Below are positions 4,501 to 61,820 of a stretch of 64,000 nt of DNA, in pieces. The notes under the pieces were generated by a model that did not search any database, was not told the DNA's origin, and saw only the letters and a program-made list of their open reading frames with translations. This DNA is from Zygnema circumcarinatum SAG 698-1b. Taxonomy: Eukaryota > Plantae > Zygnematophyceae. Position 1 is the first letter of the stretch. Every line of letters starts with the position of its first letter. The translations under genes were made by a program, and so were the position numbers. The stretch covers positions 3,195,361 to 3,259,360 of the forward strand of contig CM074805.1 in NCBI GenBank assembly GCA_037447605.1. Reading direction: 5' to 3'.

Positions 4501-7500
4501 CATCCTTCCTCTCATGTTACAAGCAATTTCTTTGCCGGGCCCTCAGAACGTGCCAAGCCATTTGAAGCAAGCTCTGGCTGACTTTAGGGGGGCGCAAGTG
4601 AAGGTGAGCTTACGAGTGCAGATGCAGTGGGTGGTTCTTCGCACAGATATGAAGAGATGGAGAACAGTCTTTTCTCAGAATTTGCTTTGGAGACTCGAAT
4701 GCTGGACAAGATTTGGATTGCACATAAGGAAGGACTCAGAAAACTTGAACTACAGGCATAGTTCTATAAATCAGTAATCTGATGTCACAAAATTATCTAT
4801 ATGTTGTATGATGTGTGAGCAGACGGTGTCGTTTCTCACTTACCTCCTGAAGACTTATGCCGACTTCATTCGGCAACATGAAGAAAGTATCGCCAAGAGC
4901 ATCGTTAATCTACTCGTCACCTGTCCTGATATGGTCTCAATCCGCAGGGTATGTGTGTTATTCGTTATTTTCCTAGAGCATCATGAATAAATTGAGAACT
5001 ATCTCAGGTACATGTCCATAGATTATCAAACCTGTAGGCCAGGGCAAGTGAAGTTATATCTGGTTCACATGTTTTGGGCTATCTTGTCACGGCAGGAATA
5101 CTCCCTTTTTTTCTCGAGACTTTGACTTTTTTTTAGGAAACTCGCGTAACCTGTCCCTCATTTCTCTTCTTGCCCCTCGTTATCCTTGTCCCAACATGCT
5201 TGCTCACCTTGGCTCAGGGCTGACGCTGACGCTAACGCTGTGGGAATTTAAGTGAAGCATGTATTGAAACTACATGTTAAACTTAGCACTGATGGAATGA
5301 TAGCGTAGTAAGGAGGAGATGCCTAATTGATGTGTAAGACAGAAGGCAAGCATTGGAAGCCGGTAGCTTTAAGCTATAGGTAATCTACTTTGTGCTAAGT
5401 CGCACTAGGTAGTTTGTGTACGTTGAGAATAATTCGATGGGACAGTGGTAAGGTACTTGCGAGGTTTTATTCGACTCTGCAATACTTGTGCAGCTGCTGC
5501 ATCATCCTTGCAGATTTCACCGATGCTTGGATAACCAGAATAGTCCCACACACGTGTCACTTTCTAATGAAGCACGGTTGTTGGTCTACAGGAATTACTG
5601 GTTGCGACAAGACATGTTCTAGCCACTGATTTCAAGCATGGATTCTATTCGCAAATAGACACGCTGCTCGATGAGAGGTGTGTGAAGTCTATGCAAACTC
5701 TGCCTACCTTATCGTTCTGTACTATATTCCTTTTTTAATAAAGCAATTTACTGTGTTTTCTACTGTGGGAGTTTGTGTGGCTTTTGTCGGTAAACGGGGA
5801 GAATTCAATATCTGATTTATTGGCCTGGTTTGTTTTGAGATAGAAGTAAGTCCGTAATTGTCTAGTAGCTCGTCTGTATGCTAATTGGTTGGCAGTTGGA
5901 TCTGGCCCTCTAAGCTGAGTGAAGTTTTAAGCGAATGTGATGTGATCGATGCACTCTTTACTGATGAGAACAGCAGTTCTTATCTATCGCGAAGGGCTGT
6001 GAGGGTAACCTACAAGGAACGAACGTCCCGTTAGAAAGCATATCCTAGGCCTGGCTTGGTTTCAATTGAGCGGTTTAAGTGGTATGGAAAGTATTGGTTT
6101 TCCTGAATACCAGGACTTTTGGGGCCCAGGAATGCAGACAATGTGAGGTTGCTTATGTATGTTCCCTCGAGCTATCCGTACACTCTCTGACTTGTAAGCA
6201 GGGCATGATGGCGCAGAGTGTTGGTGGGGTCTGGGCGGGCCTGCTACGAGTCCGTACGGCCGCTCGCGTACAGCCTGCTGGCGGAGCTCGTCCATCTCGT
6301 GCGGGCGGAGCTCAGCCTCCCACAGGTGCCCTTCTCTCTCTTGCATCACCCCACTTTTAAAGGGGCCTTCAAATTTGCTTCAAATTGGCTGAACTGAAAC
6401 CATTACTGCTGGGAGTGTTATTGTTCGTTTGTTGCGCCTGATCTCCAAGTGCGTATTTCAAAGCCATGTTTGGTGATAAGACTGTCAGTTGTAAGTGCTG
6501 CTGGTACATGCTGATAGACTTGTATCAGCACACAAGTTGAATCTCTGCTTAAGCTCAGGTGAAAGCTTCACATGGTCGCTCCTATTTATGTGTCAAGATG
6601 TACACAAATGAACTCTTACGCACTAACACAAGAGCAGTGTTTCCTTTAATGAAGCCAAGTCTAGACTTTTGCAGTCACTGCCTACTTACAGTCAAGGATG
6701 TATGCGCTTTTTGACTCCCTCTATTGGTGGTGAAATCTGTTTGGCCCTGGCAACATATCTAAATCCATTGTTACCAACTTCAACCCTTCTCTAACTTCAC
6801 TCCTTAACATGGGGTTGCGTACAGCTTTCCAGAATTGTTTACATGTTCTCCCGCAACGTTCATGATGCTTCCCTTCCCATGAGTGTGCAAACAACTTGCG
6901 TGCGGCTCATGCTCAATTTGGTGAGCTTCAATTGTCCGGCAGTTTAGAAAGCACTAGGAAAAAGGTCAAATAATTTGCACCGACACTTGTTGCGCTGTTG
7001 TCAATCTTGCTGTAATCTAATCTATCATGGTTCATCTTTGGGAATCGAAGCCTCTGCTTCAAATTTGAACTTCCATAAGTCGACTGTTTTTGAAGAGTTT
7101 TTTTTATAACCAGAACATATTTTGACTAGGAGTATTGAACAAGGCTGGGCTTAAAAGCCTATCGTTTTACTGTTATATGGTTCTGGACTGCTCTATAAAA
7201 ACGACTATGAGACAAGGCTAATTCCTTGGTTCTGAACCCAGTTCATCATGAAATGTTCATTCGACACACAGCCATGTCGATCGGGTAGCGTCAGACCCTG
7301 GGCATCTTGTAATAAGAGAGTCTAATTGTGTTATGATTATGTAGAATGTGGAATCGGAGTCACACTGACAAGCAGCCTACCTGTTCCTATTTCCCAATTC
7401 AGCTAAGGAAGGGGTCCACTAGCCGCTTTGTGTAGGTGGAGACCATATTCGCGAAGCGGCTCGGAGACCAGCTGGCGAGGGAAGAAGGCCGAGCGCTGCT

Positions 7501-10500
7501 CGTATGTTCTCTACCCCGAATGTATCTTATATATCATATGTATCTTCTGAGTCTGTAAAACAGGTTACTTTAGCTTTTGAAATTGTTTGTGGTCAAAAAA
7601 TAGTGAAAACTGAATTTTCACAGTTACGTTCGTCACGAGTAAATAAATGGGTTTCGCTTCGCGCGAAGACAAAACAGCCAACTTACTTAGTTCGCACTTG
7701 TTTAAGAGCAGAAAGTATGTACAATTTGATTGACAAACTTGTAACACTTTTATGTTTTCATGATTTTGCTATACAAATTCAGGCCAATGCCATTCAACTC
7801 ACAATCAAGCCAATTTTGTTACGCCTTTTCCCGGAAATACAGAATCACTTTGAGTTATTTGAAAACGCTCAAAGTGTTCAAATAATTTTGGTCACTTCTG
7901 CTCAAACTGAACAGGAGACTCGTCTATTGTGGACAGGTTTATATCAAAAGGAAGTCAAACAATATGTCTAATTTAGTTCTAAGAGACCATATGCGTCGAT
8001 TACTTATGGCAAAATACGAGCTTCAACGTACACAGTATAAAGCTATTTGTGAGGATCGAAATCTTCCCAATACAGTACGCTATGAATATCGTGTGAAATT
8101 GTCTCAATTACCCAGAAATAGTTCAAAAACACGAATAAGAANNNNNNNNNNAGCGCATAGTGCAGAGTGCATAGCGCCTGTCGCGAGCAAGCTCGCTAGG
8201 TTTTCCTGCGCTCGGTGAAACAAGCTACCGAAGGTCGCGCCACTCGCGAGCCAGCTCGCTCGGTTTTACCCTACGGTCGCCTGCTCCCTTCGGTCGCCCT
8301 TAGGTTGCTTGCTCTGCACTCTGCGCTACCTTCGGTAGCCTGTGACTTCGTCACGGCGCTACTTTCAGTAGCTTGTTCCACTGCGCTCGTGTCGCTCGCT
8401 GCGCTCGCTCGGTTTTACCCTACGGTCGCCTGCTCCGCCCTTCGGTCGCCTGTTCGCTTCGCTCACTGCGCTCGCTTTGCTCGCTTGCCTACGGCCCTTT
8501 GGTCGCCCTACGGTCGCCTGTTCGCTCGCTTTCACTGCGCTCGACTTGCTCGCTGCGCTCGCTCGGTTTTACTGCGCTCGACTCGCGAGCAAGCTCGCTC
8601 GGTTTTACCCTACGGTCGCCTGTGACTTCGTCACCCTTCGGTCGCCTGTGACTTCGTCACCCTTTGGTCATCCTATCAGTCGGCTGTGACTTTGTCACCG
8701 TTCGTTCGGTTGTGTCACTGCGCTCCAATTGGTCGCCTGCCTACGTCCCATTAGTCGTATGTGATTTCTTTTTGGTCACGCTCATGTGTTTGCTTTGGTG
8801 ACCCAGTCAGTCGCCAGGTTCTTTTGTCACTCGTGACAAAGCCACTAGCGACCTAGGTCGTAAGGAAGCAACCGGCTCCATTAGGTTAACTTCAACTTGT
8901 TTGAAAAGAGTACCGTTTTACTAAATCAACCAAACTCGTGGATCTTAGTCACTAAGCGTCAGCACTTTTCGTGCTACAGGTGAAAGTAAGAAGCATTGAA
9001 TACAAACACTCAATCTATGTTAAGTTTAAATAGACTTCGTTTTCATTACGAACACGTATTACGTCAAGATTTGTTATGTAAATACAATTATGCTAATATT
9101 TTCCAAATTCCGCAACTAAGCAAAATGCTAATAGTGGCACAAGTATCTTCTGAGTCTGTAAAACAGGTTACTTTAGCTTTTGAAATTGTTTGTGGGGCAC
9201 GGAATGGGACTGTGAAGCCTTTTGCTTTGCCTTTTTCTAACAACTGTAGCTCGCGATTACCTCTTGCGTTTTTTGTTTTTTGGCTTTTTTTTTATATCAT
9301 GTACGGGTTGTAGACCATAATAGAATGTTCATCATCCGTGAGGACTGACTAGAGTTAGAAGCAGGAATGGCTTTTCTCTTGATAACTTGAAGTGATGCCA
9401 ATGGTGGAGTCGTGCGGATGCCTGTTGGTGGAGCAGGGGAAAATTCTGGATGCTTTTGTGACCAAATTTAGCAGTCTCAAGAAGATTGTGCCCATGGTAA
9501 GTTCCCTGTTCGTCTGTCCAATTCATTTGCTTTCCTAGCTTTATTCGCTCCCTTTTGAAGCTCTTGGTCAGGTAGAGCAGGGTAAGAAGATTCGAACATG
9601 CTCTTTTTGTCTAGAAAGTCTATGCAGTTAATATTTTTATATACGAAGTGGAAGTGGATCAGGATTGACTATTTTTGCCCGCATTTCAAGCTTTCCAATT
9701 CAGTCTTGTCCTCTGGCCGAGCCTACAGCTTTCCTGTACGATTTCAAGAGATCCTGCTTGGACAGCTCTACGTTGGTTTAGAAATTGAGAATGCTGCCAA
9801 GTTCATGATTATGTTTGCCAGAACCAATACTTCTCCATTTGTGTCCATACAGCAGTTGAAAGGTGGTGATTAGTTTTCCTACCTATGATTGAACAAGAGA
9901 AATTTTGATTTTTGCCCTGGTCCAGTTATTGACGGAAGGGGACGAAGGCGAGTCTCGGCCTAGTCTGCGTTCTCGCCTGGAATCACCCGTGCAGGTCAGC
10001 TTTCAGTTTCTGCAGATACTGGGGCATATGCACTGCTTTAATCAAGGAAACTTTGAGCCAAGTATGCATTCTGTTCATAGAACCTGATGTTGATGTTCAC
10101 TGGGTATTCAATCTTGAGAATCCGCAGAGCATAGAGCGATCTGCATGCCGAGGACTTAAGCAAGCTTATGGATATCTTAAGCTCACATTCTGAACCTGCT
10201 GCCTTTCATATTGTTTGCATTGAGTACAGTCCTCTCCGCTCGCTGACAGAATTGGTTGTTGACGGTGGGGACGTATGCATAATCTTTCTTCCACTTGTTT
10301 CTGATTGCCCGGGCTATTTTTTTCCTCTCATAGTTGCGATCGTCCGCAAGTGCAGAACCATAGTGGAAGTCTGACGATGAGTGATGTTGCCATTGTCTGA
10401 GCCGTAATCAGGCTGCGTTAAGTTTGCAACCACCAGTGGAACATGCCAAAGAGGTCAGCGACTGCAAGCAGCTCGTGAAGACCCTTATCATGGGTAGGCT

Positions 10501-32965: not shown

Positions 32966-34222
32966 AGGGTGCCCTTAGTACCCACTTACACGGGCAGCTT
33001 CATCTTCAGCTTCAGCTTCGTGCCTTTGGAGAAGGATGACAAAAGGGATCGTAAGGTTCGCCAGCAGCTTTTCACACGCTTTGAGTCGCCTTCTTTGGCT
33101 TCTCGGTCATAGTAAACAGTCCTTCCTCTCACGTACATAACGAAGTTCCAAGTTTAGGACAGCATCTGAACAGTGCAGTAATGGCAGGGCGAAGCAATGC
33201 CAAATGAAATGTAACTGCTTGTGTAAATAAAGTTCCCTGCCTTTGTCTTGTTTATGTGCGTAGTGTCACTCTCACTCTTGTCTCATGAGATCAACGTTTC
33301 CCACTTCAACAGTGCTTGCTGCTAAATGCTTGCGGGCACCATTGGAAATCCTCGTGACCAGATAACCGAAATACACACTCATGTATGCCCGAAGCCTTTC
33401 ATATAATATAAAGCGGTGATGGTAGGCCTAGAATGTTGGGTTCCCTCAAGAAGTTTCCTTTCATTCCCAGGTCCCTCATGACTGGTTCACCTTTGTTTCC
33501 ACATTTTGTCTGAAGCCGTCATCGTGAGACCAATGCCATTTTTCTAAGAGGACTTAAAAATCGAGAGGCCTTGTAAATCCTCTCTAGCCAAGTCCATTCT
33601 CCAGTTGCGCTGACATTTTAATAAGAAAGCCCCGGCGAAAGGGCAGGCCTTTATATTTAAGGGAATTCGTATATATCGTCCCTTAATCCCCATAAATAGA
33701 TTCTTGCCTGTCCCTTAAAACGCATTTTTAAAGGAAAGTAGAGACTATCACTCAACGACAGGAATCCTAGAATAAGGCAACCACCTTAAACAACGTAAAC
33801 AAGTTATTTTCGGGAAATTTGAAATTAATTTAAGGTATTTGACCGTAAATACCGTGAAAACTCTAAAAAAGCCCTTTTTTTGGTGAAATTTTTTTTTTTT
33901 TGGTGAAAGCAAAGTAAAATGAATGGGCATTGCACTCACAATGGCGACGTCATCATTTGTATATGAACTTTACTTCTTGGCTTCACAATATGGCGCTAAA
34001 AATTGGTGCAAACTCTAGAACTCTTAAAAATTTGGACTTTTTACCAATCGATCAAAACACTTGTAGATTTGGCAATCACAACATATAATTACTCATTCAA
34101 AGACCCAATTGTACCAAAAAAACAAAAAAGACTTGTACGAAGAAAAGTCTCCAAAGTCTCCAAAAGTCTCGATCTCCATTTCCATCCCTCATGAATTACT
34201 CCAAATATGACCTATTTAGAAT

Positions 34223-34309
34223 GGAAAATGATAGAGCGGCCCCACTTTTTGGATATCGACGCCCCCTTTTTGGAAAAAATGTACTTTTTTTTTGGCTAAT
34301 CAGCCCCCC
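34223..34309 (+). repeat. Diverged partial copy of the foldback-element arm, truncated by the N-gap
   Basis: It matches the arm from 34478 onward (GGAAAATGATA..GCGGCCCCACTTTTTGGATATCG..GCTAATCAGCCCCCC), with 3 substitutions in 87 bp. Confidence 0.85.
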
Positions 34310-34319
34310 NNNNNNNNNN

Positions 34320-35673
34320 CGTTTTGTGCAGCCTGGAAGCAGCAACAAGGGAGTAACACTATTTTTGATTTCATTTCGAACAGTTTCTGTTTTTGTGGCT
34401 GAAAACCAAAACTTTGGAGGTTACGATTTTGAATTTAGCTTTTGAGAAGAGGTTTCCAAACTATGGTGGATTCTAAAGGAAAATGATACAGCGGCCCCAC
34501 TTTTTGGATATCGGCGCCCCCTTTTGGGAAAAAATGTACTTTTTTTTTGGCTAATCAGCCCCCCCTTGGATCTTTCGGGAGGAGAGATCTTGTAGACAAT
34601 CGGACCCCGCGCCTCGCGCGCAGGATCCGACCGTGCACCGACGTACGGCGCCGCGCATCGCGGCGCGGCCCGCGAGATGCGGCGAGCCTACGGAAAAGTT
34701 GTCCTCACCTGACCCTTTTGGGTCAGAGGTTGCCACGTGGCAGTCTGCCATTGGACAGCTCTGCTGCCGGTCACCCATGCCGATACAGTGGACCCCCATA
34801 ATATTTTCCACCTTGTACAGTGTGTCCCCAAGAAATTCGCCCCGATTTTGCCGAAACCACCTTTTTGTACGGTAACTCAATGTTAACGTATTAGGGCTGT
34901 CAACCTAACCTGACCTATTCTCCAATACAAAATCTGTTAATCGAAACGGATTTCAAACATGGGTCACGCTTTCACGCTGTACGGTAAGTACGAATAAAAT
35001 CTCTAAGTCGTACGGTATACGTACGGCACCAATAGGAGCTCGTGTATTTAAATCACGGATACGATACGATACGATACGTACGAACAGACATGAACTCTAG
35101 CATAATACCGCTCGCCTATTGGTAACACGGACCTTATATTTGCAAATTACAATATTTTCGCCCAGTATTTGCCGAAACCATGGCGAAAATATTATGGGGG
35201 TCCACTGTATCGGCATGGGGGACCGGCAGCAGGGCTGTCCAATGGAAAACTGCCACGTGGCAACCTCTGACCCAAAAGGGTCAGGTGAGGACAACGTTTC
35301 CGTAGGCTCGCAGCATCTCGCGGGCCACGCCGCGATGCGCGGCGCCGTACGTCGGTGCACGGTCGGATCCTGCGCGCGAGGCGCGGGGTCCGATTGTCTA
35401 CAAGATCTCTCCTCCCGAAAGATCCAAGGGGGGGCTGATTAGCCAAAAAAAAAGTACATTTTTTCCCAAAAGGGGGCGCCGATATCCAAAAAGTGGGGCC
35501 GCTGTATCATTTTCCTTTAGAATCCACCATAGTTTGGAAACCTCTTCTCAAAAGCTAAATTCAAAATCGTAACCTCCAAAGTTTTGGTTTTCAGCCACAA
35601 AAACAGAAACTGTTCGAAATGAAATCAAAAATAGTGTTACTCCCTTGTTGCTGCTTCCAGGCTGCACAAAACG
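34320..35673. mobile_element. Non-autonomous foldback/MITE-like element with 489-bp inverted arms and a 376-bp spacer
   Basis: The left arm 34320-34808 is the reverse complement of the right arm 35185-35673, with 7 mismatches by eye. There is no transposase ORF. The left end is hidden by the N-gap, so a TSD cannot be assessed. Confidence 0.8.
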
Positions 35674-61748: not shown

Positions 61749-61779
<31 letters not shown>

Positions 61780-61789
61780 NNNNNNNNNN

Positions 61790-61820
<31 letters not shown>

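Follow-up and report, generated by a model that had tools for sequence, protein, structure and literature searches.

A 53-bp mitochondrial fragment in a TRRAP intron of Zygnema circumcarinatum, and a probable assembly artefact built around it

Results

An intron of a TRRAP homologue is assembled with mitochondrial rpl5 and rps14

The window analyzed here, a stretch of 64,000 nucleotides from Zygnema circumcarinatum SAG 698-1b (contig CM074805.1 of assembly GCA_037447605.1), carries a Tra1/TRRAP homologue as the host gene of the features described below, recognizable by its Tra1_central, Tra1_ring and FAT domains and by the collinearity of positions 1563–32962 with a TRRAP protein of 3,886 amino acids (P0025). 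A query with a TRRAP exon against protein representatives returned P0025 at 64% identity, and no Zygnema protein. The exon at 7436–7501 (plus strand, as are all exons, coding segments and flanks given hereafter) corresponds to P0025 residues 397–417, is covered by contigs of nuclear depth and is followed by GT at 7502; its successor at 9437–9496 continues with residues 418–437, a segment to which several other TRRAPs also align, and is preceded by an acceptor AG at 9435–9436. As assembled, the intron between them is 1,935 nt long, making it the largest of the 47 gaps between TRRAP exon matches and some sixfold longer than the gene median (~296 nt between successive matches).

This intron opens with a left nuclear flank (NL, 7502–7539) and closes with a right nuclear flank (NR, 9196–9436). 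Directly after NL lies a 53-bp segment comprising rpl5 codons 43–60 (7540–7592), which recurs exactly at 9143–9195, directly before NR; the identity between the two copies stops at both edges. From the first copy the reading frame runs on through rpl5 codons 61–185 and the stop (7593–7971), such that 7540–7968 encodes Rpl5 residues 43–185, with the stop codon at 7969–7971. The resulting 143-residue product is 100% identical to UniRef A0A6N0GXN9 (P0001), the mitochondrial Rpl5 of Z. circumcarinatum, as is the part specified by codons 61–185. The first 8 nt of rps14 lie within the end of rpl5, and codons 1–59 of rps14 are present (7964–8141; match to positions 6–61 of the S14 model NF006477, E 2.6e-10) before it is cut by a gap; given the 101 positions of NF006477, ~40 rps14 codons are absent at this point.

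The gap itself (8142–8151, unstranded) consists of 10 N and is spanned by no listed contig. Its length is a placeholder, because each of the three gaps in the window measures 10 N; one of the other two lies at a repeat and the second in a poly-A run. To the right of the gap, from 8152 to ~8860, extends a GC-rich dispersed-repeat region of the mitogenome that lies upstream of rpl5 (50–65% GC), composed of the dispersed direct repeats of families D1–D4 and D6, together with short palindromes. This gives way to a left mitochondrial flank (ML, 8861–9142) holding the rpl5 5′ leader and codons 1–42, and then to the second 53-bp copy, so that Rpl5 residues 1–60 are encoded by 9017–9195, with the start codon at 9017. 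Joining 9017–9195 to 7593–7971 yields an open reading frame that agrees with A0A6N0GXN9 at 185 of 185 residues. In the records searched, no other contig encoded the full Rpl5 (P0001) or either of the chimeric open reading frames created at the borders of the insert (7504–7968 and 8996–9310), and a scan of 7400–9400 for tRNAs and Rfam families found none.

An earlier, sequence-only reading of this DNA had described the arrangement as one full turn of a mitochondrial circle lodged in a TRRAP intron. Its host assignment holds, given the domains, the collinearity with P0025 and the alignment of both bordering exons, and the same applies to the order that it gave (rpl5 codons 43–185, the 5′ part of rps14, 10 N, repeats, rpl5 codons 1–60), which the translations and the S14 match bear out, to the exact identity of the first and last 53 bp, and to the intact 185-residue Rpl5 restored on joining the ends. 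It was also correct that removing one 1,603-bp unit would leave an intron of ordinary size for the gene: the collapsed form is 332 nt, bounded by GT and AG, against the median gap given above. With regard to the full turn, the terminal redundancy and the permuted order are both present, but the turn itself was not observed; nothing in the window shows that 8141 adjoins 8152 in any molecule, and the turn is accordingly an interpretation.

Depth and contig structure place a nuclear fragment beside abundant mitochondrial DNA

We placed Logan k = 31 contigs from four public DNA runs (X1, X2, X4 and X6, drawn from three studies) on positions 6600–10100, noting that such contigs show presence rather than absence, as contig building can drop low-depth connections. 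The sequence-only reading had proposed a comparison of depth over 7593–9142 with that of the flanks, and this comparison places the flanks at 16–63x and, in X4 and X6, the unique insert at ~5,100–6,100x, with a depth jump in these two runs of ~100- to 200-fold at both 7540 and 9195 (insert depth is higher in X1 and X2, which are noisy runs). On the left, contigs of 18–58x cover NL and continue within the 53 bp as far as 7575 (X4 record 17, which is 20,058 nt long at 58x and has no differences from the window; X6 record 25; X1 record 2); on the right, NR is covered at 16–63x (X4 record 24, X6 record 32). Within the insert, rpl5 codons 61–185 and the stop are represented by contigs of ~5,140x (X4 record 18, X6 record 26) and ML by contigs of 5,500–6,100x (X4 records 22 and 23; X6 records 28, 29 and 31), in each case without differences.

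The surroundings of the gap are of another kind. In X4 as in X6, the mitochondrial contigs extend only to 8135, which leaves 6 nt up to the gap, and the sequence to the right of the gap falls in high-copy repeats; over 8121–8705, the summed contig depth reaches ~200–350x that of single-copy mtDNA (X4, X6), with hundreds of joints, and the sum within the repeat region exceeds 10^6. Contiguity of the rps14 3′ end with the region upstream of rpl5 was not seen in these contigs, which leave the gap unbridged.

Around the 53-bp segment, the k = 31 graph forms a clean X whose core measures 47 bp. On the left side, the nuclear contig runs as far as 7575 and the mitochondrial one as far as 9178; on the right side, the mitochondrial and nuclear contigs start at 7563 and 9166, respectively. 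Runs from three studies contain contigs of 16–63x that cross both junctions between nuclear sequence and the 53 bp (7539|7540 and 9195|9196). As both junctions are present at nuclear depth in independent data, there is a real nuclear mitochondrial segment (NUMT) of 53 bp or more, and the TRRAP intron does contain a small NUMT. No contig linked left flank, 53 bp and right flank, as contigs built at k = 31 cannot cross a shared core of 47 bp.

A private T marks both copies of the 53-bp segment

Relative to the ~5,500x mitochondrial contigs, the 53 bp match at 52 of 53 positions. The exception is offset 5, at which the window has T in both copies (7545 and 9148); the change is synonymous (TCT versus TCC, Ser44). 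Mitochondrial DNA has C at the position equivalent to 9148 in 65,270 of 65,270 depth units of X1, 5,500 of 5,500 of X4 and 5,481 of 5,481 of X6, and in X2, 158 of 20,596 depth units are other than C (0.8%). T was seen on the left nuclear contig only, which is unbranched up to 7575, the last 31-mer to hold it. We considered whether T at 9148 could reflect variation of the mitogenome, between strains or through heteroplasmy, and rejected this on the grounds that all four runs have C in mitochondrial and T in nuclear context. Because both copies in the window carry T where mtDNA has C, they look like one segment written twice.

In the assembly, the T at 9148 stands beside the left mitochondrial flank, a context that no contig of X1, X4 or X6 shows. 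None of the 25 31-mers that would join this flank to T (starts 9118–9142) occurs in the contigs of X1, X4 or X6, with the proviso that contigs may drop rare paths, and the left nuclear contig has no incoming branch at 7569/7570, the point at which a path combining mitochondrial left flank and T would merge. X6 does retain a 60-nt variant contig at 5.5x alongside the 5,500x form (records 29 and 30), indicating that rare paths were not systematically removed in that run; in view of the non-C depth of X2, we nevertheless take the missing words as good evidence rather than proof. Every other 31-mer in the window exists both if the intron holds only the 53 bp and if the insert is genuine, and the k = 31 graph alone thus cannot separate the two.

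The distribution of differences is informative in its own right. Across the 1,045 bp of unique insert (7593–8135 and 8641–9142), the window and the mitochondrial contigs show zero differences, and if the whole insert were one NUMT, the chance of a lone difference falling within the 53 bp would be p = 0.048, a value that concerns one base difference only. We also asked whether the NUMT might extend to 58 bp, as 3 of the 5 bases to its left agree (family D5); this was indistinguishable from chance and was set aside.

Discussion

A short NUMT and a probable assembly excursion into mtDNA

The reading that best fits the depth, the graph and the private T is one that the sequence-only reading had singled out as a serious option, namely a 53-bp micro-NUMT at which the assembler looped through mtDNA. 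We regard it as highly probable that a single nuclear NUMT of 53 bp has been written twice, with true mtDNA and a gap wrongly placed between the two copies. Under this reading, the TRRAP intron would hold only rpl5 codons 43–60, with T for C at offset 5, and the NUMT would have an exact core of 47 bp in common with mtDNA that is ~100-fold more abundant. The assembler would then leave the intron via this core into mitochondrial sequence from both sides, giving rise to two chimeric contigs: one comprising the left intron flank, the NUMT, the 3′ part of rpl5 and the 5′ part of rps14, stopping at a branch of the mitochondrial graph, and another that starts inside a high-copy repeat and comprises the region upstream of rpl5, the 5′ part of rpl5, the NUMT and the right flank. 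A scaffolder aware that the nuclear flanks are neighbors might juxtapose both contigs across a minimal 10-N gap. The duplicated NUMT would thereby bracket 1,550 bp whose proper place is the 216-kb mitogenome, and the true intron would be 332 nt. The contig ends at branches of the mitochondrial graph are what would be expected of an assembler that strays into mtDNA and stops at the next ambiguity, and rpl5 codons 61–185 with the stop (7593–7971) and ML (8861–9142) are probably true mitochondrial sequence that is misplaced here. That the left flank runs through the NUMT into the right flank is an inference, as is the exact step at which the assembler went wrong.

Two of the three nuclear assemblies were produced with SPAdes and Platanus-allee from a combination of short, mate-pair and long reads (PMC11096116, PMC9915684). 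Against the artefact, a 53-bp repeat ought to be resolved in a de Bruijn graph once k reaches 55, and a plain de Bruijn walk, or polishing by majority, would give C at 9148. A T beside the mitochondrial left flank could have come about through a mismatch-tolerant merge of contig ends, or through correction based on reads that have their anchor in the right nuclear flank, all of which would carry T if the intron holds nothing beyond the NUMT.

Alternatives in which the insert is real

It is mainly because this T is hard for an assembler to produce that we keep a small share of our confidence for a real insert of modest size. Such an insert, which we consider unlikely, would measure at least ~1.7 kb and consist either of a permuted piece of mtDNA or of two mtDNA fragments whose ends overlap by 53 bp; its source could be a concatemer, a rolling-circle product or a repeat-mediated subgenomic circle with rpl5 and rps14, and the gap would hide only the remainder of rps14 and some repeats. 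The assembly would then be right as given, with contigs set adjacent by the scaffolder, reads carrying T would be the simplest source of that base beside the mitochondrial left flank, and the remaining k = 31 words and the depths would be equally expected. Against this, the contigs of X1, X4 and X6 lack the words combining mitochondrial left flank and T, with no incoming branch at 7569/7570, and the sole divergent base of at least 1.1 kb must fall within the 53-bp overlap and in both copies (p ~0.05 or less), whereas under the artefact it can fall nowhere else, and must appear in both. A genuine insert would moreover leave the intron at ~6x the gene median, rps14 is not joined to the repeat region by any contig (the mitochondrial contigs stopping at 8135), and the published mitogenome is a single circle of 216 kb.

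A more specific form of this alternative has a subgenomic circle or concatemer with rpl5 and rps14, formed via the GC-rich repeats, integrate as slightly more than one turn. The very-high-copy repeat family upstream of rpl5 could in principle mediate such circles, and an integrated one would, if true, be a preserved record of a sublimon-type molecule from an algal sister of the land plants; we judge this form unlikely. The reading that gave the locus its first description, in which the intron has taken up one turn of a mitochondrial circle, is not supported.

Part of plant-type mtDNA occurs as concatemers and as linear molecules that are circularly permuted, and very large NUMTs are known in Arabidopsis. 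Both facts lend some color to the suggestion, also made in the sequence-only reading, that a large mitogenome insertion is concealed in the gap, in which case a linear molecule of unit length (~216 kb) plus 53 bp would have integrated; terminal redundancy is what one would expect of a molecule longer than one unit. We hold this to be very unlikely. It inherits the problems of the private T and of the missing words that attend a smaller insert, a fragment exceeding unit length by just 53 bp is very improbable a priori, and a 216-kb intron in an essential gene is implausible in a compact genome of 71 Mb in which the median gap in this gene is ~300 nt. The 10-N gap does not differ in kind from the two obviously local gaps in the window, which suggests short-range links, and the nuclear assemblies, at 67–71 Mb, agree in size with flow cytometry (PMC11096116).

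The published mitogenomes of three strains are single circles of 215,954–216,190 bp, those of SAG 698-1b and UTEX 1560 measuring 216,190 bp (circularized from one 238-kb Canu contig) and that of UTEX 1559 215,954 bp (MT040698), and they differ by extra repeats only (PMC11096116, PMC9915684). A mitogenome in the form of a single 216-kb circle removes the need for a minicircle and most of its plausibility, and we therefore assign next to no probability to the proposal of the earlier reading that the mitogenome is fragmented, with rpl5 and rps14 on a two-gene circle of ~2 kb of which the nucleus captured one turn: nothing speaks for it beyond the permuted order and its terminal redundancy, the deposited record encodes exactly this Rpl5 (PMC11096116, PMC9915684), and the circle is closed neither in the window nor in the contigs, with at least 40 rps14 codons missing.

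Relation to known systems

The real part of the locus, then, is an ordinary intronic NUMT of 53 bp, identical to mtDNA at 52 of 53 positions, and the captured circle would not be a real feature. It resembles the short intronic NUMTs of plants and algae in placing organelle DNA within non-coding nuclear DNA between flanks of nuclear depth, in its near-identity to the mitogenome, and in lacking a target-site duplication or a function; it sits at the small end of their size range and is otherwise in no way unusual. The literature that we searched made no mention of NUMTs in Zygnema.

In repeat-induced misassemblies, contig ends run on into a high-copy repeat and are joined across a minimal gap, which creates a false duplication on either side of the Ns. 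The assembled structure shares with them a central gap with identical sequence on both sides, contig ends at branch points of the graph and a 100-fold jump in depth at the repeat borders; in addition, one of its junction contexts was not seen in the contigs of X1, X4 and X6. It differs from them in that the "repeat" is here an organelle genome rather than a transposon, and for this reason the artefact takes on the look of an organelle insert that is circularly permuted and holds a split but intact gene. NUMTs that are large or exceed one genome unit are similar in that mtDNA is bounded by nuclear DNA and mitochondrial segments are duplicated internally, but they have diverged from mtDNA along their whole length, whereas the Zygnema insert diverges only in the 53 bp. 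The mitochondrial insertion on chromosome 2 of Arabidopsis is a large NUMT, and such NUMTs are backed by spanning clones and by long reads at nuclear depth. Lice and some protists provide examples of minicircular or fragmented mitochondrial genomes; the Zygnema locus has their permuted order and terminal redundancy, and departs from them in the 216-kb circle of its mitogenome and in showing no closure.

In the Z. circumcarinatum assembly, short NUMTs seem able to draw true mtDNA into nuclear scaffolds, and this serves as a warning, as the outcome resembles captured circles: "permuted organelle inserts" with intact split genes. If the artefact reading holds, the TRRAP gene model should have an intron of 332 nt at this position.

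The host gene and the mitochondrial reading frames

The host Tra1/TRRAP gene is complete within the window (1563–32962, plus strand), with ~48 exon matches that run collinear with the 3,886-residue TRRAP comparison protein P0025 at an identity of ~45–80% per exon, and a median gap between exons of 296 nt.

Within the apparent mitochondrial insert, the rps14 start codon (at 7964) lies inside the end of rpl5, such that the two genes share 8 nt (7964–7971, comprising the last codons of rpl5 and its stop codon at 7969–7971); this overlap forms a compact, operon-like junction. The Zygnema mitochondrial Rpl5 encoded by the two parts (7540–7968 and 9017–9195) is unusually divergent: it scores 23.5 bits against the Pfam Ribosomal_L5_C model (below the gathering score of 27.8), and its identity to land-plant and other zygnematophyte Rpl5 sequences is only 44–51%, with two Logan-derived relatives at 80–83%.

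Contig structure across rps14 and the GC-rich repeats

Mitochondrial contigs from both X4 and X6 (independent, Illumina-like public DNA runs of the species, read as Logan k=31 contigs) end at the same position inside rps14, 8135. This shared end marks a point where the k=31 graph branches, and a second copy of the surrounding rps14 piece (8106–8141) is therefore probable elsewhere, either as another NUMT or as a mitochondrial repeat.

The GC-rich repeats upstream of rpl5 (8152–8705) belong to a very abundant dispersed repeat family of the mitogenome; contigs from X4 and X6 that match them reach a summed depth of ~200–350 times that of single-copy mtDNA and display more than 500 joints, with depth at position 8348 split about half T and half G.

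X11 (a run of another organism) contains 18% of the 31-mers sampled from 7300–9600, and one rock metagenome and one microbial-mat metagenome contain 6% each.

Other assembly gaps in the window

The window has two further 10-N gaps. The first (34310–34319, within 34220–35515) follows an 87–90-nt element that recurs as a direct copy at 34475–34564 (96%) and an inverted copy at 35429–35515 (97%), an arrangement resembling a MITE or terminal-inverted-repeat structure. The second (61780–61789, within 61749–61819) lies within a poly-A tract at least 60 A long, a homopolymer that the assembler was unable to size.
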